Assembly: GCF_001194135.2 (NCBI RefSeq)
Contig: NC_068982.1
Location: forward strand, 6,283,617-6,347,616
Source of the DNA: Octopus bimaculoides
Taxonomy: Eukaryota
Direction: 5' to 3'
Length of the DNA stretch: 64,000 nt
The notes under the pieces are model-generated. The model worked only from the letters and a program-made list of their open reading frames with translations. It did not search any database and was not told the DNA's origin. The position numbers and the translations under genes were made by a program. The number at the start of each line of letters is the position of its first letter. Within the stretch, counting starts at the first letter, position 1. Below, piece by piece: positions 7,661-61,877 of this stretch.

Positions 7661-8614
7661 TTGTTTGGATTCACTATATATATATGCAGATGAGCATGAA
7701 AAGACAACACAAAAGACAAGACGCGGTAAGGGTTGTTATTATTAGAGTCATTCCCAAAGTGAAGTAAATGAAAATATATTCACGTTTCAGGCGTAGACCA
7801 TCATCAAAGTGTAGAAGGAAAAACGAGAAGCGAAAAGAGAAAAAGGAATTATGTTCAAGAAAGAAATTCCATGAACCTCAAAGCTATGCTTTGTTGAAAA
7901 TAACTTGAATGCGAGAAGGAGAAAAGAAGAACTTCAAACTCAAGAGAGTGGGCGAGGAGAGAGAAGCCTAACGTAAACTGCGTAGGTGTATATGAGTGTG
8001 TGTGTGTGTGTGTGNNNNNNNNNNNNNNNNNNNNNNNNNNNNNNNNNNNNNNNNNNNNNNNNNNNNNNNNNNNNNNNNNNNNNNNNNNNNNNNNNNNNNN
8101 NNNNNNNNNNNNNNNNNNNNNNNNNNNNNNNNNNNNNNNNNNNNNNNNNNNNNNNNNNNNNNNNNNNNNNNNNNNNNNNNNNNNNNNNNNNNNNNNNNNN
8201 NNNNNNNNNNNNNNNNNNNNATATATATATATATATATATATAAACACACACATATATAGCTGCATATCTGTTTTGAACGTCGACTGCGTGTGTAGGTGT
8301 TATTTTGGAGAGTACCTGTGCTTGTTCGTTTACGCGCATGCGTGTTGTGTTCCCGACCTTTGCATGTGGTGTAAATGTGTGTGGAACGCTGAGTGTAAGT
8401 ACATTCGATCCCGTATAGAGCTGTGACAAAAAGTGAGCATCGTTTTCCATTAAAGTGTACGTGTAAGTTTTTGTGACAAAGTGTGTGTAAGTTTTGCGGA
8501 ATCGATGCCTATATTATATGCGGGTGTATATCTAAGCTGCTCTTGTATGTGTGTGTTGCATGAATGTATTGCGTGTTTACGTATGCTTACTTGTCGTTTG
8601 TGAGTTAAGTTGGT

Positions 8615-8890
8615 ATAGGAAACTTGAATTTGGGCATTCAACCATTCATCGACACCTGCATGCCATCAGAAAAGTCAACAAACTGGGTCAATGGGTTCCT
8701 CACAAACTTTTCAAGTCTAATCGCACGCAGAGTGAATGTGTGCTCTTCTTTGCTGTCACGTCTCATGAATGAACATTTTTTAGACCGAATAATGACTGCC
8801 GACGAGAAATGGGTTCTCTATAAAAGTGTCAAGCACCGAAGACAGTCGGTAGGGAAAGGAGAAATACGGGTACCCCAGTTTAAAGAAGGT
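8615..8890 (+). pseudogene. mariner transposase remnant
   Basis: KLEFGHSTIHRHLHAIRKVNKLGQWVPHKL (WVPHEL motif), then after a frameshift HFLDRIMTADEKWVLY (first catalytic D motif TGDEKW). Confidence 0.9.
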
Positions 8891-8919
8891 CTAATAGATA
8901 GATAAATAGATAGATAGAA

Positions 8920-10689: not shown

Positions 10690-10923
10690 AGGTGGAAAGC
10701 TGGCAGAATCGATAGCACGCCGGGCGAAATGCTTAGAGGTATTTCGTCTGCGGTTACGTTTTGAGTTCAAATTCCGCCGAGTTCGACTTTGCCTTTCATC
10801 CTTTCGGGGTCGATAAATTAAGTACCAGTTACGCACTGGGGTTGATGTAATGGACTTAACCCGTTTGTCTGTCCTTGTTTGTTCCCTCTATGTTTAGCCC
10901 CTTGTGGGCAGTAAAAAAATAAG
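10690..10923 (+). mobile_element. SINE family A (tail type 1)
   Basis: Young copy ending GTCTGTCCTTGTTTGTTCCCTCTATGTTTAGCCCCTTGTGGGC. Confidence 0.92.
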
Positions 10924-11125
10924 AATCGTGAGCACGCTGGACGAAATGCTTAGCGGTATTTCGCCCGTCGCTACGTTCTGAATTTAAACTCCGCGGAGGT
11001 CGACTTTGCCTTTCACCCCTTCGGGGTCGATAAATTAAGTACCAGTTACGCAGTGGGGTCGACGTATTTGAATTATCCCTCTCCCCCCAAAATTTCAGGC
11101 CTTGTGCCTATAGTAGAGAGGATTA
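10924..11125 (+). mobile_element. SINE family A (tail type 2), tandem to the previous copy
   Basis: Starts directly after the previous tail, head slightly clipped; ends CCCCCAAAATTTCAGGCCTTGTGCC. Confidence 0.9.
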
Positions 11126-11149
11126 TTTCCTTATTCCATTATTATACTC

Positions 11150-11300: not shown

Positions 11301-11938
11301 AATTTCTACCGCGATAAACTTTTCCTTTCACCCTTCCAGTGCCGATACTGTATAGCTTAAGCACTTAATTCGATTAAATTCACAATGAATCTATGATAAA
11401 AATCATTATTATGTGCTCTAAACGAAACTGGAAGTTCATCTAAACGATACAACAATTTCTAGTTGTTCTTGGAATACGTATTTCTTTCACTTTATTATAA
11501 AAGCCTAAAATATTATGAGCTCCGTTTATAGCTTTATTTTAACGATTAGCAATCAAAAAACATCAAATTATAAGTACTATATGTAAAAGAGCTTTGTCGT
11601 AGTGCAAAAGCAATGCAAATGTCCCCTCAGCATGCACTGTTTCACTCAGCTGCACTCTTAAAACTATTTCATGTCTTTATAAAACAGCGGATTCTCTTTT
11701 GATTATTAGGTACAAACTGAATGAACGTTACGCCAAATAATAAATAGACAGAAATTGCTTAAGGGAAATTATTTTAAGGAAACGTTCTGCATACAAAATC
11801 TAAATACAATTACAATAGGAGCTTGCGTATGCAATACAGTGTGTCTTAAGACATTGATCAGTTGGAATTATTCAATGAGTTAGAAGAAGCCTACTACCGT
11901 GTGGTGTTTAAAATACAAGCGACAAACAGTGGTGATTA

Positions 11939-11971
<33 letters not shown>

Positions 11972-12399
11972 NNNNNNNNNNNNNNNNNNNNNNNNNNNNN
12001 NNNNNNNNNNNNNNNNNNNNNNNNNNNNNNNNNNNNNNNNNNNNNNNNNNNNNNNNNNNNNNNNNNNNNNNNNNNNNNNNNNNNNNNNNNNNNNNNNNNN
12101 NNNNNNNNNNNNNNNNNNNNNNNNNNNNNNNNNNNNNNNNNNNNNNNNNNNNNNNNNNNNNNNNNNNNNNNNNNNNNNNNNNNNNNNNNNNNNNNNNNNN
12201 NNNNNNNNNNNNNNNNNNNNNNNNNNNNNNNNNNNNNNNNNNNNNNNNNNNNNNNNNNNNNNNNNNNNNNNNNNNNNNNNNNNNNNNNNNNNNNNNNNNN
12301 NNNNNNNNNNNNNNNNNNNNNNNNNNNNNNNNNNNNNNNNNNNNNNNNNNNNNNNNNNNNNNNNNNNNNNNNNNNNNNNNNNNNNNNATATATATATTA

Positions 12400-18610: not shown

Positions 18611-18959
18611 GTGTGTGTGTGTGTGTGTGTGCGTGTATGTGTGTGTGTGTGTGCATGTGTCTGTGTCTGTGTTCGAGTAATTAGAGCATTATGATACCTC
18701 AATTCATTAATACTAGATTCGAAGAACAATTGACTGGAAATCTATAAACCAATGAAATCATAATAAGTATAAATTTGAATGCCTGGCGTATAGGAGCAAT
18801 GTTTTACTGTGGTCGGCGAGAATTTATGAGAGGTGTTTGTATTAACCTACTCTTTTAGTTGGTAACATCTCGCTAATTCAGATTTCAGAATATAGGTATA
18901 GCAGTTGAGTTGAACACGATACTAAGTAAGAAGATGAATCTTAATGAATTAACGCCCAA

Positions 18960-19198
18960 TTAGAGTAAAGATTATTTGCCAACATAACATGGCAGTTCTG
19001 GTTTAGGACCAATGTTGCTGTAATTTAGCCCCACAAGACATCGCCTCCAGCTGGTTATATGACACGATTTGTACCCTTATATTTTCGAACAAGGGAATCT
19101 AGCACCCCCACTCTTTGAGTTAAGTGGGGTTAAATTACAGCAACATTCGTCCTGAACCAGGACTGCCGTGTTATGTTTGCAAATAATCTTTACTCCAA
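18960..19198. repeat. 74-bp inverted repeat pair with ~90-bp spacer
   Basis: 18960-19033 versus the reverse complement of 19125-19198, about 90% identical by eye. Confidence 0.9.
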
Positions 19199-21078
19199 AG
19201 TATTGCTGCTGAATATCTCTCGTTGTGAGATTTGCAAATAGTAATTTTCTAACGCCCAATTAGATTATTGTAACCAGTCAGAAATTTATATACTCTAGAA
19301 AAACGCTAAGAAGGCCACTGAAATTTTCTTAGATTTCTTATTGGTGACCGGGTTTTAAGCGACCTTGTGTAATCCCATCGACCTGGTGCCATATTCGACT
19401 ATTATTCTTTCACGAAAAATGCCTTGATATCTTTTTTGTAATGGAAGGAGAAACCAAAGCCTCCTACAACACACAGCTAATTCATCAATTAACGTATCAG
19501 CTTTTTTCCGTTGACAATATTTCTGAATTAATGAGATTTTTATATGAGAATAAAACGAGAAAGCTAGCACCAAACTATAAATTAACAACAAGCACCTTGC
19601 ATTATAATCATCGTTTGTGTATTCATTTAATCAGAAAAAGATCTTTTTTAATCGTAATGTTTCATGTTTTTTTTTCAAATATTATTTACTATTTCTGCAT
19701 AATGTTTCAAAAGTTTTAGTGTTGTAAAACAAGGAATAAGTACAGAGCAGCGTGGTAGTTACAATTTCCGGTTGCAGATATTTCAGTTCATTTCTCCACC
19801 AACCAATGTGATGCATATATACACCTCAAAGTCTAGAATATATATAAACTTTATGTGTATGTGCGTTAACGTATGTGTACATGCATACATACAGTGATTA
19901 AAATCATTGTGCATTTCTTCTGCGGACCAGTTTGGATTCTTAACAGAAATTATTTCTCTTCAAGTGAAAAATGCATGCATGTCACAAATCTCATTTCCTT
20001 TCTCTTTATTTTTAATATTTTATTTGATCTTTTGGGAAACTTAATTTTTCCCATTTATAATACTTGTTTATATTTGAATAACTTACGTAGCATATTTCTG
20101 AAACTCTTTTAGTAATAAATTCTGTTAGTTGTAGAAGATACTAATTTTTTTTTATATAGTTAAGCATAATTAATTCCACCAGCAGTGGTTTGTATACAGA
20201 TTTCGTTTTATCAAGATTTTGTTACGGGAAGACAGTAATTTGACACAAATAGCAAAATGTTCATCAACGCTGGTCTTCCCAAACATTTTGTACTGCTATC
20301 TTCTTCTTCTTCTTCTTCTTCTTAAAAAAAAAATGGGTACACACGTTTTTATTCAAATCAACCGTTTGCAATTTTTGCTTTGAAAAAGCAGACGCACTAT
20401 AATCTACTTTAGAAAATTGTTTTCCAAATTTCTCTTGAGACAATTGATTTGTCTAAGAAATGCCTAATTCAGGCAAACTAAATAATATAGATTTTTATTC
20501 GGGAAATAGGCAACTAAGAGTGAAAGGAAAATATTCGCATATATTTAATAGTAATAAATACGTATTTTGTTGTTCAACAAAAATAATTCGGTAGTTTTTT
20601 TTTTTCAGCCAAGAATTCCAATAAATAAGAGACATCAGTAGGTATTCATTTTTAAAAATTCAAATTCAAAATCAATGTTGTTATTATAGAATATTCGAAA
20701 AAATAATAGAAAAATTATACCGAAACTTTTTTCTTAAAATAAAAATAAAAAATTAACTCAAAAGTATTGTTTCTCTGGAGAGAAATCGAATTCAAAATTA
20801 GCGTTAATATAAAATATTGAAGAAAATCTTTTTTCCTCCGGCAAAAATAGTGCCGAAATTCGAAGGAGCCCTGATAAATGTTTTAGTAAAACGATGAAAA
20901 CTAACGAATATAACTAGTAAAGGCGTCGAGCATGCTGATGATTGCTCCATCATTGTTGCATTCTATCATAAGTTGCTTAAGTTCAATCACCATTACAGAA
21001 CCATGTCCTTCATGAAAGTTTTGAAAGGATCTCATCAGTTTATTCTTCTATGAGTTTGTTTCCAGATGACGACTCATC

Positions 21079-21307
21079 TTATTTCTCTATTGCCCACAAG
21101 GGGCTAAACATAGAGGGGACAAACAAGGACAGACAAAGGGATTAAGTCGATTGCATCGACCCCAGTGTGTAACTGGTATTTAATTTATCGACCCCGAAAG
21201 GATGAAAGGCAAAGTCGACCTCGGCGGAATTTGAATTCAGAACATAAAGACAGACGAAATACCGCAAAGCATTTCGCCCAGCATGCAAACATTTCTGCCA
21301 GCTCGCC
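21079..21307 (-). mobile_element. SINE family A (tail type 1)
   Basis: Reverse complement closely matches 10690-10923. Confidence 0.92.
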
Positions 21308-28516: not shown

Positions 28517-28730
28517 GCGGCGTGCTGGCAGAAATGTTAGCACGCAGGGCGAAATGTTTAGCGGTATTTTGTCTGTCTTTACGTTCTGAGTTCAAATTCC
28601 GCCGAGGTCGACTTTACCTTTCATCTTTCCGGAGTCGATAAATTAAGTACCAGTTGCGTACTGGGATCGATGTAATCGATTGGCCCCCTCCCCCAGAATT
28701 TTGGGCCTTGTGCCTCGATTAGAAAAGGTT
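28517..28730 (+). mobile_element. SINE family A (tail type 2)
   Basis: GAGTTCAAATTCCGCCGAGGTCGACTTT body; GGCCCCCTCCCC tail. Confidence 0.92.
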
Positions 28731-28869
28731 ATTCAGGTTTTATTTCAAGATTTCTTGCTAATATCCTAGATCCAAGGCTCCCCTCATTGGAATTTCAACA
28801 ACATCAACAGGGTATTTTTGTATGTATACGTGCAGATTTATATGCTTTGTTTTATGTATGTACCTTCAT

Positions 28870-29499
28870 TCATGTATGTATCTTGGCGATCTTGGGCGAG
28901 GAAACATTCAAGAAAACCGACTGGATTTGCTTCAAAAAGTGCCAAGTTCACCTGCGACATGACCAGCCTGGTGTGCTTTTGATCCGGCGTCAAAAGTTGT
29001 GGCACCAACCGAGCTGAAACCTTCGACATGCCAAGTTCGTTATGCAAAATGTTCTCAATTCGTTCACGGGAGATGCCTACAGTATTAGCTATCTGATTAA
29101 CATTTAAACGTCTGTCATTCATCACCATGTGGTGAACACGGTCGATGTTTACTTGGGTGGTGACTGTGGCAGGACGTCTGGACCTTGGGTCATCTTCAAT
29201 TCAGCTGCCCACTTTTGCATAGTTGATAATACTGGAACTTCAACCCCTAATGTCCTTGGGGGCTAACCCCTTTTTCTGCAGATATTTCGTAACATCACGG
29301 TGCCAAATTTTATCCATTTTCACGAAATGTCTCTAGTACCAGTTTCCCAAGTCCTCAATTCCGTATCCAATGTGGGTTTTTCTAGAACGAAAACATACAT
29401 TTAGCATCAGTAAAGATTGAATTTAATGCATGCCAAGTTTAATTACTGTATGATAATTCTTTCATAGTCATCCTATGATCTTTCCAGCCCACCCTAGTA
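28870..29499 (-). mobile_element. mariner element 5' half: TIR plus decayed transposase
   Basis: Minus strand TA-CTAGGGTGGGCTGGAAAGATCATAGGATGAC (TIR-like, 29467-29499); MDKIWHR.. begins at 29317; MVMNDRRLNVNQIANTVGISRERIENILHNELGMSKVSARLVPQLLT. Confidence 0.88.
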
Positions 29500-30233
29500 T
29501 AAACACAGAATGAAGTACTTCCTTCCTTCACTAGTAGAAGCACCTTCTTAGAATCTAAAGCGATATCCAAATAAGGGTAACATGAATTTTCGGCAGCACA
29601 GGTTTTCATTTCACCTTCCCTTTTCAAATAGTGTTTCTCAAGTAATGTTTCATGAATTTTAAATAATTTCCCATATATAGAAATCTCTCCAAGATGGATG
29701 AACCTTTAAAAAAAAAATCATCTGAAACGAAATCAAGTTTTATACCTTTTATTTGATCCTCACATCTATGCACAGCTGCACTGCATTACGAAAATGCTGA
29801 GTGGATCAAGTTTGCCTTTAATGGAATAATTATCCCCGAAAATGACTTGGAATATGTTTTTAAAGTAAAGGCGTTCTATTTTGGTTTCAGGGCATACATT
29901 CATTCTGCATATATATCAGTGTTCTGTAAGATTTGTAATATGCCACTAAGGCAAAATGTGATATGAAGAGATAATAGTGTATGACGTGAAAAAAATATAA
30001 GTAATAAAGACCTATCCCTTTAAGAGTTTTCCTCTATCCCTACCAAACCATTATTTGGAACACATAAAGAAGATAATTAGGGTTCGTATTATTTAGTAGC
30101 AAGGACACAGTATTTAGTTTTGCGACCATACTATTCTACCACGTATATTAATATTTTACAAGTCAATATTGAGCTTTACTTGTGTGTTAGCAGTGCGTTG
30201 TCTTCATTTTTAATTTTATCTCCACAGATTTTC

Positions 30234-36562: not shown

Positions 36563-39267
36563 TAATGAAATACCAGTCTAGTAAGAAGATCGATTAAATT
36601 AGCGATAGTTTATATGAAGCACCGGTCGCGGCGAGTTTCATAAAACCATAAATGTCACTATTTTTTTCATTTACGTAGGACAAAAAATAATAAATAAAAT
36701 AAACACAGAGAAGTAATTTTACATATATTTCATTATACAATGCATTGTTAAGTTCTCGGTTTACAAAATTTGTCTGGCTGTTATGAACAAACACAATTAC
36801 ATGTATATGACGGGCCATGAAATTTTCTATCAATTTTGTCAACTGCATTCTGACAAGACTAAACCAACAACACTTCTCGACCTCCGGCAGAAAGTTTGAT
36901 ATTGATACCATAATAAAAAAAAACTCTTTCCCAATAATGGTTGAATTCTTTTGGTAATCCTTCACTATCACACCTTCTGTCTCTTCAAATGGATACGTTT
37001 CAGTTTTTTTGATTTCTAGACGTCCTCATCTGACTTATGCCTTCCCTCTCTCAAGCAAAGGTAGCACTCATTCAGTTTTTGCTCCCGCTTACTGTCTTCT
37101 TTGGTACACCATTTCTTTCTTTCGCTCCTCCTCCTCCTCCTCCTCCTCCTCCTCNNNNNNNNNNNNNNNNNNNNNNNNNNNNNNNNNNNNNNNNNNNNNN
37201 NNNNNNNNNNNNNNNNNNNNNNNNNNNTCTCTCTCTCTCTCGCTCGCTCGCTATGTCTTTCAGTTTACATACAATTTCCCTTTCTTTTAAAAGCTATTAA
37301 GGAAAGTATGAGCATCACTACATCCCAGTTCTTTTATTCTTCTTTCCTATCAATTTGAAGGTCCTTTTTTAAGTAAAAATAATTCTAGACATAATGCAAT
37401 TTATAAAACATGTAAATTCAATTATACGCTATTGAAAAGGAAAGTTAATTTTTGAATTTTTTTCTCGCAGCGACTTTACAAGTTACAAATATGTTACTAC
37501 GAGAATGGCTACTACCTGACAGTATATTTTTAGAGATAATTATTGATTCACTCTCACGACATATTTGGAGAAAAAGAAATCTGTGAGAAACCATTCCCCC
37601 TGAGTTAGTTCAATATGTATCGATTTTATTCAACTCACTTTGCATTCTCATGCTATCTCACATGAACAAACGCGAAACAAACGCCAAACTAATAATGAGA
37701 ATGGCATTATGCTCGACATGTATGCAGTTTAGCTTTGATGAGGTTGAATTACGTCTTGTTGTGAAATTTCTGGAATGATTTATAAATTGTCATAGAATTT
37801 TTAACTATTTTAAAGTAGTTAAGTCTTATTTATTGTTCACTATTGAATTAATGAAAACATGGTAGGACTGAATTGGCAATAAATAAAAGAACACCTTTTC
37901 AAAAGAATGACAAGCCTTATTGATGTTGCGTGAACACAAAATCTATGTCATGCAAGAAAAACTTTCTGGTTACACGATACATTCTGGTTTCCGATCTAAT
38001 TGTATTAAATTATAAAACAGATTGGTTTCATCAAACAGTACTTGCTTATATACATATGCACGTGTACACATGTATGTATGTATGTATGTATGTATGTATG
38101 TATGTATGTATGTACGTATACGTGCATGTGTGCGTGTCTGTNNNNNNNNNNNNNNNNNNNNNNNNNNNNNNNNNNNNNNNNNNNNNNNNNNNNNNNNNNN
38201 NNNNNNNNNNNNNNNNNNNNNNNNNNNNNNNNNNNNNNNNNNNNNNNNNNNNNNNNNNNNNNNNNNNNNNNNNNNNNNNNNNNNNNNNNNNNNNNNNNNN
38301 NNNNNNNNNNNNNNNNNNNNNATGCAAGAAAAACTTTCTGGTTACACGATACATTCTGGTTTCCGATCTAATTGTATTAAATTATAAAACAGATTGGTTT
38401 CATCAAACAGTACTTGCTTATATACATATGCACGTGTACACATGTATGTATGTATGTATGTATGTATGTATGTATGTATGTATGTACGTATACGTGCATG
38501 TGTGCGTGTCTGTGTGCGTGTCTGTGTGCGTGTCTGTGTGCATGTTTGCTTTGTGGATGAAAATAATGTGAAAGCGATTTTCACGAGGTTAATCCTTTTT
38601 ACACATGCTAGTCTCTACTGATATAATCTTATCCAAATAAGGTATTAACGCTTTACCTGCATTGGTTAAGAAGTTATGAAGAATTTATTTGCTAATAACA
38701 TGCTGTGAGATACCATATTGATGTGAAATTGTAATCCCTTGAGACTTCAATGCTACACTTGAATTAAGCTATCCTATATGGAAAAGTAATCATTGTCCCA
38801 CGGGAGACCTACTTTACAATAATCAAAGCTTTTTGTTCACTGTTAATTCTTAGTTTGAGTACAAAAATTATTGATGACACGTGTCAGTCTTCGATAGATT
38901 TTGCTTGTAGAACTGTCATAGTGAGAAGTAAACTTATCTGCGCTGATTATTACGTCACTGAGCGTTGCAATTGTATGTATGTATGTGTGTATATATATAC
39001 ATATCAGACGCAAGTCAAAAATAATAGTCATTACATATAATTCCTTTATCAGAGCAAAATAGGCTTACAGTTGTTTCCCGTAGTCCGACTTGAGAAAATT
39101 AATGCCAAGTTTGGCAGAGCCATTGCTCAATAATCTAAGTAATATTGTTAGCCTGGTGTGCCAACAGAGAGCTTATGAAGTATTTTGCCCGGATTGATAA
39201 TCGTCACTATTTGTTCTCTCTCTCTTTCTCTCTCCCTCTCATATACATATATATATATATATATATG

Positions 39268-49845: not shown

Positions 49846-51049
49846 CATGATTAGTCCCAACGCACGAAGCTCTCGGATTTTGAATCACTCTGTTCTGCTA
49901 AATATTAATAAAAATATAACTTAATGGCATTCTATAGGATGCGGTATGTTTTTGTGTGTGTATGCGTGTGTATGTGTGTGTATATACATGTGTGCTTATA
50001 TGTGCGTGTGTGTGCCTGTATCAATAGTATTCCAGTTTAGTTGAAGTGGAAATTTGTCTGGACGGTTAGTAATATAGGAAGCCTTGTGTTTGCAATGCGT
50101 TGATTATGAGCGGACATAGTTATTGTTTCGCCCCAGAAATATGATAAAGGCACGCCGGCAGTGAATATCTTATTATTTTGTGTATCGAGCCCTAAGCTGT
50201 CCAGTATTCCCTTACTTCTAAGGCGGAAGGTATTTTTCTTTCATAGTTAAGGAAGAGTTGGCTGCTATCTATAATGGATCGAACTTCGTTGGTTTGTGTG
50301 AGGTTGTCATGAGAGATCATTAACGATTGTGAAGCCAAGTGTTTATATAGAATTTGATGGTCTTAATGGTACGTTGGTCAAGTGTAAAATGGCGAATTAC
50401 AAAATTGTTTCCCTGACACAAAGCAATTGTTAATAGGTATTTTCAAAAGAAACTACGTTGTTATATGAACACTGAAGGGTATTTTAATGTCTCGCTTCAT
50501 AGAAAGACTGTAATTATGGACGGTTGAAAGTAGGTTTCCTACAGATTACTTCTGTCATAGTTTTTCGACCTGCATAAAAATGCATATAATGTCATGTAGA
50601 TTTTTCAGGTACAGAAGAAAATCACAACTAGAACCGAACAGTCATTTAATTCATTTAATGTAATTGATCGAATATGGGTGGTGATCAGCCATGTTAGAGA
50701 GCATTATAGCAGAGACGAGACAGCAAAATTACGATCCTAGGTATTTCAGCGAAGAAGTTTATTTCGGTGATTCTGCTACTCCACACATCCAAAAACGACG
50801 TTTTCGATAGGAAGTATTTGAGAGAATTACAGTCTCAAGGAAATTAAAGAGTAAGCGTTCATGACCAAATAGCAGAAGAACGAAACCATTGTTAGTAAGG
50901 ATCCAAACCTATATCTTTGAACATGTTCTAAGAGTTGATATTTACAGCCCACTGTCACCAAAATTTAAGACAAAAAGAGTAAAATCATTATAGTAACTGA
51001 TTTTATGTCATTATATATTAGTAAAGCAGCAATATACCCACAAATGTAA

Positions 51050-51262
51050 AGCAGCGAGCCGGTAGAATCGTTAGCACGCCGGGCGAAATGCTTAGCGGTA
51101 TTTCGTCAGTCTTTGCATTCTGAGTTCAAATTCCGCCGAGGTCGACATTGCCTTTTATTCTTTCGGGGGTCGATAAATTAAGTACCAATTGCGTACTTTC
51201 GTCGATCTAATCGACTGGCCCCTCCCTAAAAATTCCGGGCCTTGTACCTAGAGTAGAAAGGA
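51050..51262 (+). mobile_element. SINE family A (tail type 2)
   Basis: Same structure as 28517-28730. Confidence 0.92.
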
Positions 51263-51439
51263 AAATACCCACAAATAAATCTTATAAAAATTGATGTGTT
51301 ATAATCGAGCTTATTAAGCATTGGTCGGCCGCATATATTTTAGGAGTAACTAAGATTACACCTGCCAGTTTGTTTTCACATTTTAAATTGGTGGAGTCTG
51401 ATTCAAAAGAGATTAAGTTTCTATTTTAAGCAAGTTGAA

Positions 51440-52059: not shown

Positions 52060-53379
52060 TTAGGGTATCTAAGAAATACCACCATGCTTGAAATAGCAGC
52101 CAAAACCTTGATTCTAAAANNNNNNNNNNNNNNNNNNNNNNNNNNNNNNNNNNNNNNNNNNNNNNNNNNNNNNNNNNNNNNNNNNNNNNNNNNNNNNNNN
52201 NNNNNNNNNNNNNNNNNNNNNNNNNNNNNNNNNNNNNNNNNNNNNNNNNNNNNNNNNNNNNNNNNNNNNNNNNNNNNNNNNNNNNNNNNNNNNNNNNNNN
52301 NNNNNNNNNNNNNNNNNNNNNNNNNNNNNNNNNNNNNNNNNNNNNNNNNNNNNNNNNNNNNNNNNNNNNNNNNNNNNNNNNNNNNNNNNNNNNNNNNNNN
52401 NNNNNNNNNNNNNNNNNNNNNNNNNNNNNNNNNNNNNNNNNNNNNNNNNNNNNNNNNNNNNNNNNNNNNNNNNNNNNNNNNNNNNNNNNNNNNNNNNNNN
52501 NNNNNNNNNNNNNNNNNNNNNNNNNNNNNNNNNNNNNNNNNNNNNNNNNNNNNNNNNNNNNNNNNNNNNNNNNNNNNNNNNNNNNNNNNNNNNNNNNNNN
52601 NNNNNNNNNNNNNNNNNNNNNNNNNNNNNNNNNNNNNNNNNNNNNNNNNNNNNNNNNNNNNNNNNNNNNNNNNNNNNNNNNNNNNNNNNNNNNNNNNNNN
52701 NNNNNNNNNNNNNNNNNNNNNNNNNNNNNNNNNNNNNNNNNNNNNNNNNNNNNNNNNNNNNNNNNNNNNNNNNNNNNNNNNNNNNNNNNNNNNNNNNNNN
52801 NNNNNNNNNNNNNNNNNNNNNNNNNNNNNNNNNNNNNNNNNNNNNNNNNNNNNNNNNNNNNNNNNNNNNNNNNNNNNNNNNNNNNNNNNNNNNNNNNNNN
52901 NNNNNNNNNNNNNNNNNNNNNNNNNNNNNNNNNNNNNNNNNNNNNNNNNNNNNNNNNNNNNNNNNNNNNNNNNNNNNNNNNNNNNNNNNNNNNNNNNNNN
53001 NNNNNNNNNNNNNNNNNNNNNNNNNNNNNNNNNNNNNNNNNNNNNNNTATATATATATGGGTGTACACGCATGTGTTTCACGCGAGTGTGAGTGAGCATA
53101 TGCATATATAGCATGTGCGTATTTTAGACGTGTATTTGAAGATAATTGTGTGTGTATGGGTATGTGCACATGTGTGTGTGTGCGCGCGTGTGTGCAGATA
53201 TGTATGTGTGTATATGCATGGTTGCATATATATGAGCATATATAGGCGCATATGTGGGTGTGCATATATTAATTTCACGCGAGTGTGAATGATCATATAC
53301 ATATAGACACAAGTACGTGGGTGTGCGTGTGCGCATGTGTATGTATGGACATGCGCGCTTACGCGATTTCTGGGAGCAT

Positions 53380-53630
53380 TTTTATTTCCTTACTTGTTTA
53401 CTTTCTCCCCTTCGGTTTTTTCCCTTTATCTAACGGTCATTCTAATAGCTCTTTTGTCTTAATAACGGTCAATTACATAGTAATTTCCCTCTGTTTAACG
53501 GTCATTTTCATAGCATTTTTTTGATTGCCTCTTTAGCTGACGAGATGCCGGAGCAGTTTCCCGTCCCGACATCCGAAACTCGGAGTCTTATTATGGCAAC
53601 CAAATAATTGTCATATATTTTATTACAGAT
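53380..53630 (+). mobile_element. Probable PLE-type 3' terminus (family 3)
   Basis: Pyrimidine-rich tract, then HHR, then a short tail running into (TA)n; this layout is typical of PLE pseudo-LTRs (inference). Confidence 0.45.
53521..53603 (+). ncRNA. Type I hammerhead ribozyme motif, near-canonical core
   Basis: Stem I distal TTGATTGCC(53521-29)/GGCAACCAA(53595-603), internal loop TCTT/TTAT, basal TAG/TTA; core CTGACGA 53537-43; stem II GATG...CATC (53544-73) plus one extra C; GAAA 53575-78; stem III ACT-cgg-AGT; cleavage triplet GTC 53585-87. Confidence 0.75.
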
Positions 53631-54104
53631 ATATATATATATATATNNNNNNNNNNNNNNNNNNNNNNNNNNNNNNNNNNNNNNNNNNNNNNNNNNNNNN
53701 NNNNNNNNNNNNNNNNNNNNNNNNNNNNNNNNNNNNNNNNNNNNNNNNNNNNNNNNNNNNNNNNNNNNNNNNNNNNNNNNNNNNNNNNNNNNNNNNNNNN
53801 NNNNNNNNNNNNNNNNNNNNNNNNNNNNNNNNNNNNNNNNNNNNNNNNNNNNNNNNNNNNNNNNNNNNNNNNNNNNNNNNNNNNNNNNNNNNNNNNNNNN
53901 NNNNNNNNNNNNNNNNNNNNNNNNNNNNNNNNNNNNNNNNNNNNNNNNNNNNNNNNNNNNNNNNNNNNNNNNNNNNNNNNNNNNNNNNNNNNNNNNNNNN
54001 NNNNNNNNNNNNNNNNNNNNNNNNNNNNNNNNNNNNNNNNNNNNNNNNNNNNNNNNNNNNNNNAGTTCTTGAAACTTGGTTATTTTCCCTAAAACTATAT
54101 ATTT

Positions 54105-55426: not shown

Positions 55427-55729
55427 GTGAGTTAGAGATTGAGAAACCAACTAAGGGATAGTACCTATCCAATATACTGCTGGTAGTGTACCCAATTATT
55501 CATACCCAAGTGCTAGTTATTGCGTGGCAATCTCGCAATTGTGTGTTATATATGGGCGGGGATAAAAAGTGGTTTACCCTTAATTTATACTGCAAATAAG
55601 AAAATGGAGAGGATACAAAAACGACTAGTACATGTGTATGTATTCTTCTAATACATTCTAATACAATAGAATAATGTCTACCGGCTGATGTATGTCGCTT
55701 TTGCATCCTCTCCATTTTCTTATTTGCCG

Positions 55730-55760
<31 letters not shown>

Positions 55761-60965: not shown

Positions 60966-61671
60966 CATATATATATATATACATATATGATTATATATAT
61001 AGATATGATTGTATATATANNNNNNNNNNNNNNNNNNNNNNNNNNNNNNNNNNNNNNNNNNNNNNNNNNNNNNNNNNNNNNNNNNNNNNNNNNAAGAATA
61101 AGTATTAGGCTTACAAAGAATAAGCTCTGGGGTCGATTTGCTCGACTAAAGGCGGTGCTCCAGCATGGCCGTATTCAAATGACTGAAACAAATAAAAGAG
61201 CATATATATATATATACATATATATACAATCATATATATGTTCACAAACACACACACACATATATACTATATACATATATTTACACACTCTCATACTCAT
61301 AGATAGATAGATAGATAGATAGATATGAGTTTCGAAGAACACTGGGTAAACAGAACTGAGTACATGAGTATATATATTTTATGGCTTTTGTCGGTATAAG
61401 TTCCAAAGAGAATCAAGGGCCGAAACTTTCGTGCGGCCAATTAAGTCACTTAGTAACTTGAGCCGATGACAATCGCTTTAGTCCCTTGCTGTTCTGGAGT
61501 TTTAACTACGTGTACCAGGAGTCATCAGTTAAGTTATGGCTCAAGATATAACTGTGAGTCACTTGTCCCACGATCATGTGAATACTCAAGCGAAATTCCC
61601 AAGAAGCAAGAGATTGGTATATTCTTTGGATACTTTAATTTCGTATGTTTTATTTCCATCATTCTTTTCTA

Positions 61672-61877
61672 CACTAGGCGCAAGGCCCGAAATTTTGGGG
61701 GAGGGTGTCAGTCGACTAGATCAACTCCAATATGCAACTGGTACTTAATTTATCGACCCCGAAAGGATGAAAGACAAAGTTGACCTTGGTGGAATTTGAA
61801 CTCAGAACATAAAGACAAACGAAATACTGCTAAGCACTTCGCCCGGCGCGCTAACGTTTCTGCCAGCTCACCGCCAT
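61672..61877 (-). mobile_element. SINE family A (tail type 2)
   Basis: Reverse complement of the family A consensus. Confidence 0.9.

Follow-up and report, generated by a model that had tools for sequence, protein, structure and literature searches.

A hammerhead-like ribozyme motif of 83 nt was identified on the plus strand, at positions 53521-53603, of a 64,000-nt stretch of the Octopus bimaculoides genome (contig NC_068982.1, positions 6,283,617 to 6,347,616). This whole stretch is referred to below as the window, its first letter being position 1, and the motif is the sole one of its kind in it. We consider the motif to be a solitary, truncated relic of the hammerhead type found in Penelope-like elements (PLEs), or of a non-autonomous element derived from a PLE, with a probability of roughly 60%. 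The invariant core of the motif is complete, three helices can all be drawn around it, and it is located in a short single-copy fragment flanked by low-complexity and microsatellite DNA; descent from a PLE is what we infer from this architecture and context. An earlier note on this DNA, made from the letters alone, had described a near-canonical type I hammerhead, a candidate for an active ribozyme, with a link to PLEs. The hammerhead-type motif and the PLE link are retained here, in view of the core, the three-helix layout, the microsatellite context and the PLE-rich genomes of octopuses, whereas the term near-canonical and the idea of an efficient ribozyme are not.

The motif consists of the following parts.

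53521-53529, plus strand: 5' strand of the closing (distal) stem of helix I, TTGATTGCC, which pairs with 53595-53603 and is kept in the minimum free energy (MFE) fold.
53530-53533, plus strand: 5' side of loop 1, TCTT, unpairable with TTAT at 53591-53594.
53534-53536, plus strand: 5' strand of basal helix I, TAG, which pairs with TTA at 53588-53590 as U-A, A-U and G.U.
53537-53543, plus strand: core box C3 to A9, CUGACGA (CTGACGA in the DNA), from the sequence and the Infernal alignment.
53544-53574, plus strand: helix II and loop 2, with a G10.1-C11.1 closing pair, a C53548.A53569 mismatch and a loop of about 14 nt.
53575-53578, plus strand: core nucleotides G12, A13 and A14 together with A15.1 (GAAA), from the sequence and the Infernal alignment.
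53578-53586, plus strand: helix III, ACUCGGAGU, drawn in a monomer as 3 bp of ACT/AGT with a CGG loop.
53587, plus strand: C17, after which cleavage is predicted (between 53587 and 53588), from the core alignment.
53588-53603, plus strand: 3' strands of helix I, namely basal TTA, loop 1 TTAT and closing stem GGCAACCAA, from their pairing.

The invariant hammerhead core comprises C3 to A9, G12, A13 and A14, the A15.1-U16.1 pair (A53578-T53586), and C53587 as H17. Among the CTGANGA boxes on either strand of the window, only the one at 53537-53543 is followed by a compatible GAAA box, helix III and helix I. The primary description in the earlier note holds: the boxes CTGACGA, GAAA and GTC are present base for base, in order and in place; the 3-bp stem III with its CGG loop, the stem I built of three basal pairs, a 4x4 loop and a distal helix, and the extended stem II with an extra C were all recovered, and the core alignment places the predicted cut after C53587, as had been proposed. 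The closing stem pairs TTGATTGCC with GGCAACCAA at eight of nine positions, with one A.C mismatch, and loop 1 is a 4x4 internal loop of TCTT facing TTAT. The three pairs of basal helix I are weak, and the G.U pair at 1.1-2.1 lies beside the core. Helix II pairs GATGCCGG with CCGACATC over eight positions, with one C.A mismatch and one C (53573 or 53574) left unpaired; it can be drawn with a bulged C at 11.2 or with an unpaired C between 11.1 and G12, and Infernal aligns it as a G...C pair with a 29-nt insert. G53544 directly follows A9 and is paired, leaving no unpaired nucleotide between A9 and 10.1.

In helix III, the 9-nt ACUCGGAGU is a quasi-palindrome, self-complementary 4+4 about a central G (4+1+4), and Infernal aligns it as <<<<.>>>>, an arrangement that is impossible for a hairpin; when two molecules dimerise, it may pair between them as a longer helix III. 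The extra C had been named as the only defect of the motif, a claim that does not hold. The G.U pair at 1.1-2.1 and the C.A mismatch in helix II add to it, the unpaired A9/10.1 nucleotide typical of PLE hammerheads is missing too, and helix III cannot be stable as the hairpin of a monomer.

The surroundings of the motif are made up as follows.

52120-53047 and 53647-54063, no strand: assembly gaps of 928 N and 417 N, read from the sequence.
53361-53628, plus strand: unique element fragment of about 270 bp, with boundaries read from the sequence.
53431-53528, plus strand: three direct repeats of about 32-33 nt beginning TAACGGTCA, from repeat finding in the window.
53629-53646, no strand: (AT)n microsatellite that enters the assembly gap, read from the sequence.

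The two gaps enclose a 600-bp island (53048-53646) that holds the motif, and the left ~310 bp of this island (53048-53360) are TG-rich and of low complexity. The element fragment opens with a T/C-rich 5' part, continues with the three direct repeats and the hammerhead motif, and extends 41 nt past the cleavage site. T and C together account for 69% of the sequence upstream of the motif (53366-53536), and the third TAACGGTCA repeat extends into TTGATTGCC, the 5' half of the helix I closing stem. According to previous studies, the PLE hammerhead sits in terminal pseudo-long terminal repeats (pseudo-LTRs) near the 3' end of the element, microsatellites are favoured as PLE targets, and short-read assemblies are disturbed at PLEs (PMC8557442). 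The distance from C17 to the (AT)n tract is 41 nt, which is inside the span of ~40-200 bp from the 3' end of PLE insertions. Penelope elements are reported to be numerous in octopus genomes, where they expanded roughly 56 million years ago (PMC13282606, PMC8967140).

Within the TG-rich flank there is also a 56-nt direct repeat (53053-53108 and 53250-53305, 80% identity, 197 nt apart), which does not involve the motif. A tandem unit of ~197 bp in the island was considered and rejected, as only this flank repeat was seen and the motif lies outside it.

Hammerheads from two PLE or PLE-like settings were used as controls. A PLE endonuclease-domain query returned 2769 matches; the 120 matches listed were from corals and unnamed assemblies, with no Octopus among those listed. 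In two ENA contigs with a coral-like PLE (L002 and L003), a head-to-head PLE pair (1284-4260 in L002) carries an open reading frame (ORF) with RVT_1 on one strand and an ORF with HTH_animal and the endonuclease on the other. Both PLE copies possess an identical minimal hammerhead, ATCGC-CTGATGA-A-GACC...GGTC-GAAACGTC-GCGAT, which is located ~120 nt after the endonuclease ORF and ~53 nt before the two copies stop matching. The second control comes from a sample of 61 kb of Octopus loci. In Octopus sinensis (GCA_006345805.1, CM016862.1; locus L006, positions 11498-12075), two truncated arms form an inverted pair, 97% complementary, around a 66-nt spacer; (TATC)n/(TA)n tracts flank the insertion on both sides, and just one of its ends has a tail, of 39 nt. 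PLE insertions are often inverted or tandem truncated copies with a 30-40 bp tail on one side (PMC8557442), and the L006 insertion shows this published signature. Each of its arms holds a motif of the form CGUACG-CUGACGA-C-AGGUCAAAACCU-A-GAAACUGCAGUC-CGUGCG, and its helix III, ACUGCAGU, is perfectly palindromic. A search of L006 by tblastn with coral-type PLE proteins found no PLE ORF to which this motif could be tied.

Several features recur in both the L006 motif and our candidate. The first core box is CUGACGA, helix III is palindromic with ACU at its start and AGU at its end, and the base just 5' of G12 is unpaired; in helix I, an internal loop separates the basal stem from the closing stem, and the 12-mer TTATTATGGCAA is found near a (TA)n junction. 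In ~125 kb of octopus sequence this 12-mer occurs only at 53588-53599 of the window and at 12065-12076 of L006, in both cases downstream of the hammerhead motif, and in L006 it ends the one-sided tail of the insertion. It could represent a conserved tail or terminus of PLEs or simply a chance match, and it is the only tie between the candidate element and a PLE-style tail. Unlike those of the candidate, the basal helix I and the helix II of L006 measure 6 bp and 4 bp, and ~200 nt separate the L006 hammerhead from the end of the insertion; beyond the short common pieces, nothing is alignable between the two. These likenesses were noticed after the fact and are suggestive evidence, short of proof.

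An old member of the L006 family, now decayed (~71-79% identity), is present at 18940-19260 of the window (minus strand); the stretch that follows the hammerhead can still be recognised in it, and the core boxes are lost. At 12322-12400 of L006, an island of ~80 nt between (TA)n tracts reads AGCTTC-CTGATGA...GAAACAG..CTGTA-GAAGCT. Its helix I has 6 bp and its helix III 4 bp, helix II is poor, and the island is possibly another hammerhead relic beside a microsatellite.

Several results weigh against a PLE-type relic and are considered together here, with the chance figures following in the next paragraph. A search with blastn (7-nt words) found no second copy of the element in the window, and the 61 kb of Octopus loci yielded none either. 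Pattern scans of viral DNA, of metagenome DNA (two patterns) and of prokaryote genome DNA gave no homologue, and six-frame pseudo-proteins of the element had no matches in a collection of 5.8 billion proteins. No remnant of a reverse transcriptase (RT) or a GIY-YIG endonuclease was found near the motif or elsewhere in the window by motif search or by tblastn with coral-type PLE proteins, and therefore the PLE link stands on architecture and context alone. PLE hammerheads have an unpaired base between A9 and 10.1 (PMC4209133), and this extra base on the 5' side is possessed by the L002 and L006 controls, whereas the candidate instead has an unpaired C 3' of helix II. The gaps 52120-53047 and 53647-54063 conceal what surrounds the motif. 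Finally, a minus-strand reading would serve equally well, with the fragment as the A-rich 3' terminus of a different retroposon that has a (CA)n-like tail. As to the missing coding remnants, retention of an ORF is not expected in a 5'-truncated PLE copy. The motif search and tblastn likewise found no RT or endonuclease remnants in L005-L007, no ORF of at least 120 aa other than low-complexity ones occurs in the element region, and ten ORFs lying up to 7.5 kb from the motif had no exact counterpart in the protein collection. The sole match of the pattern scans, in a metagenome-assembled genome of Acidimicrobiia (L004), was discarded: it does not fold as a hammerhead, and ~2 matches are expected by chance. 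A tRNA-derived head of a short interspersed nuclear element (SINE) was also discarded, as ARAGORN found no tRNA-like sequence.

A chance resemblance is an unlikely but serious alternative. It would have AT-rich, repeat-rich DNA that happens to hold the boxes and some weak helices, the true structure being the closing stem and two unrelated hairpins. The three weak pairs of basal helix I, a helix II that requires both a bulge and a mismatch, and the lack of a second copy or homologue in the searches made are all in keeping with it, as are the fold energies given below. At gathering thresholds, no family of Rfam release 15 reached its threshold anywhere in the window. When the 297 nt that surround the motif were scanned permissively against 4227 families, Hammerhead_1 (RF00163) scored 15.0 bits (E = 0.99; gathering score 34); linear rescaling of this E value yields ~0.05 expected matches to Hammerhead_1 alone in the whole window. 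Such figures would favour chance, but Hammerhead_1 gave neither control hammerhead at E <= 10 (L002/L003 searched as 11.6 kb, L006 as 297 nt), and the candidate outscores both of these hammerheads from PLE settings. Because Rfam misses both controls, the sub-threshold score of the candidate is uninformative and is no evidence against it.

Simulated first-order Markov windows served as the chance model for pattern descriptors. A broad minimal-hammerhead descriptor, which tolerates bulges, additional bases next to helix II, and helix III loops that are long or missing, gave 0.096 matches per simulated window, with at least one match in 8% of the windows, which again tells against a genuine relic. 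A tailored descriptor, just loose enough to admit the motif, gave 0.0025 matches per simulated window (0.25%), a figure that argues against chance and is weakened by the descriptor having been written after the motif had been seen. The real window contains this one match, and no descriptor match occurs in decoys made by reversing the sequence of the window and of five loci. Three features lie outside both descriptors, namely the 8/9 closing stem, with a ~1% chance of arising by an arithmetic estimate, the palindromic helix III, and the position 41 nt before a microsatellite. The closing stem, the 4+1+4 palindrome and the 41-nt distance fit PLE hammerheads, and the CUGACGA box and the ACU/AGU ends of helix III recur in the O. 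sinensis motif of L006. A chance origin of the motif within this window is thus unlikely, although a handful of comparable chance motifs are still expected genome-wide.

The earlier note had also presented the motif as the best candidate for an active self-cleaving RNA and had proposed folding as a check; the folding results do not support this view. The MFE structure is not the hammerhead fold: the MFE is -21.2 kcal/mol (z = -1.5), and the best hammerhead-constrained fold is -9.1 kcal/mol, a difference of 12 kcal/mol, compared with 2.2 (L002) and 7 (L006) kcal/mol in the controls. In the MFE and centroid structures, only the closing stem is kept of the hammerhead helices, GACG is paired with CGUC, and the core is occupied by a competing hairpin:

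53568-53587, plus strand: competing hairpin GAC-UCCG[AAACU]CGGA-GUC, present in both the MFE and the centroid structure, with GAAA and C17 buried inside it.

A dimer folded as a double hammerhead, whose helices I and III form between the two molecules, has a predicted energy of -31.9 kcal/mol, against -42.4 kcal/mol for two monomers and -51.1 kcal/mol for the cofold optimum, and is thus disfavoured as modelled; nearest-neighbour energies of this kind leave out the stabilisation by the core and by tertiary contacts. According to the model, self-cleavage of this copy is doubtful and would be poor or none. The copy is probably inactive or very weakly active, because it stands alone, has the extra C, the G.U pair and the mismatch in helix II, and is predicted to misfold. 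PLE hammerheads in general show low activity in vitro and are mainly single motifs in truncated copies (PMC4209133), so that even an intact motif of the PLE type would be a poor cleaver.

An efficient type I ribozyme with a loop 1-loop 2 contact, for example a monomer of a tandem retrozyme array that is hidden in the gaps and yields circular RNAs, is accordingly improbable in our judgement. Every invariant core position is intact, collapsed tandem copies could hide in the flanking gaps, and invertebrate retrozymes of 170-400 nt bear type I hammerheads that cleave well (PMC7229834), all of which would suit such a ribozyme. However, canonical metazoan type I hammerheads have a helix I of 6 bp, a helix II of 4 bp and conserved interacting loops (PMC4209133). 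Helices of three pairs and eight positions misfit the 6/4 geometry required for the tertiary contact, and with these lengths the geometry of any loop 1-loop 2 contact would be non-canonical; the term near-canonical and the proposed contact of the Schistosoma type therefore find no support in the candidate. The extra C beside G12, the 12 kcal/mol penalty and the unfavourable dimer energies speak against efficient cleavage as well. No tandem unit containing the motif is visible within the 600-bp island, which has assembly gaps on both sides, and both gaps are sufficiently explained because the adjoining sequence is microsatellite.

A minus-strand retroposon, in which the A-rich 3' end and (CA)n-like tail of a SINE or a long interspersed nuclear element (LINE) would make the plus-strand hammerhead boxes incidental, agrees with the 69% pyrimidine upstream plus strand (a purine/A-rich minus strand abutting TG/CA-rich low complexity) and with the dominance of LINEs and SINEs in Octopus genomes, but it is highly improbable, as no similarity to SINE or LINE copies was found in the window or the sampled Octopus loci and the full core, three helices and palindrome would be left unexplained.

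If the motif is a PLE-type relic, it would be located near the 3' end of a 5'-truncated PLE-type fragment of ~270 bp between microsatellites. In the RNA of an intact element, the three helices would fold round the CUGANGA/GAAA core; cleavage would then proceed by attack of the 2'-OH of C17 on the 3' phosphate of the same nucleotide, with a 2',3'-cyclic phosphate and a 5'-OH as the resulting ends. Helix III of PLE hammerheads is absent or small and palindromic, and these hammerheads are thought to work as dimers (PMC4209133). In tandem or multimeric transcripts, two copies of the present motif would pair via an extended helix III to form a double hammerhead; because helix III is too short for a hairpin and is quasi-palindromic, we infer that cleavage would need two copies, and that this copy has probably lost its activity. 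The role of hammerheads in PLEs is debated, and cleavage has been reported to be dispensable for insertion in vitro (PMC11167929).

The candidate and L006 might together represent an octopus sub-type of PLE hammerhead, with CUGACGA, an ACU...AGU palindromic helix III and an unpaired base 3' of helix II before G12; we hold this as a tentative and rather doubtful proposal. That the unpaired base on the 3' side, present in both, would stand in for the A9/10.1 base or occur besides it is put forward with the same reserve. If the sub-type is real and its dimers cleave, it would widen the tolerance known for the junction of the hammerhead core, and its motifs would be the first hammerheads described in cephalopods; a full-text literature search combining "hammerhead ribozyme" with "octopus" found no paper describing such a ribozyme. 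If a PLE-type hammerhead in octopus is confirmed, cephalopods would join the animals with Penelope-type hammerheads in their genomes. The Rfam type I model misses this class, and sub-threshold matches at the ends of microsatellite-flanked invertebrate repeats deserve a check at the family level. PLE hammerheads are already known to be abundant in invertebrates, and the motif opens no new question in this respect.

Other features of the window do not involve the motif. Remnants of mariner / SETMAR-like ("GVQW3-like") transposases were found at 28841-29500 (minus strand) and 8609-8902 (plus strand). The best named protein matches of these remnants, including the part at 28841-29200 (minus strand), are from Octopus sinensis and O. 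bimaculoides; a related mariner copy is present in a mantis shrimp, which hints at a widely shared mariner family, and two ENA contigs with related mariner sequence (L001 and L008) have no SINEs in common with the window and were therefore unsuitable as octopus samples. A SINE-like repeat of ~200 bp is present in copies at ~10698-11126, 21080-21305, 28521-28739, 51047-51268 and 61667-61870, with 75-92% identity to O. sinensis and O. bimaculoides loci and no tRNA-like head by ARAGORN. An inverted repeat at 55587-55625 and 55694-55732 (39-nt arms, 92% complementary, 68 nt apart), beside (TATC)n, could be a hairpin-forming element or one resembling a miniature inverted-repeat transposable element (MITE). 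At 37930-38571, identical sequence flanks the gap 38142-38321 and an ORF translation is repeated verbatim, and this duplication is most likely an artefact of scaffolding or gap closure.

Compared with known systems, the candidate has the core order, the GUC triplet, the type I topology and the short helix III in common with the hammerheads of Schistosoma Sm-alpha, newt satellite 2, non-LTR retrozymes and RF00163. These canonical forms have helices of 6 and 4 bp, conserved loop nucleotides and tandem repeats of 170-400 bp, whereas the candidate has helices of 3 and 8 and shows no tandem unit in its island. In metazoan PLE hammerheads, helix II is 6-8 bp and helix I is 2-5 bp (PMC4209133, Cervera & de la Pena 2014); loop 1 is ill-defined with a closing stem, and G10.1-C11.1 is conserved (PMC4209133). 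The candidate differs from them in its long loop 2 (~14 nt) and in being known without a PLE ORF or pseudo-LTR. Like the PLE hammerheads (Drosophila, rotifer, shrimp and mosquito variants), it shows type I topology with a small self-complementary helix III, a long helix II (8), a short helix I (3), a 4x4 loop with a closing stem, the G10.1-C11.1 pair and a motif that stands alone within a short fragment. A base is bulged inside helix II of the PLE hammerhead from Drosophila virilis (PMC4209133), and the candidate can be drawn with such a bulge. By this analogy, it is the PLE hammerhead kind, and not the canonical type I, that the candidate fits.

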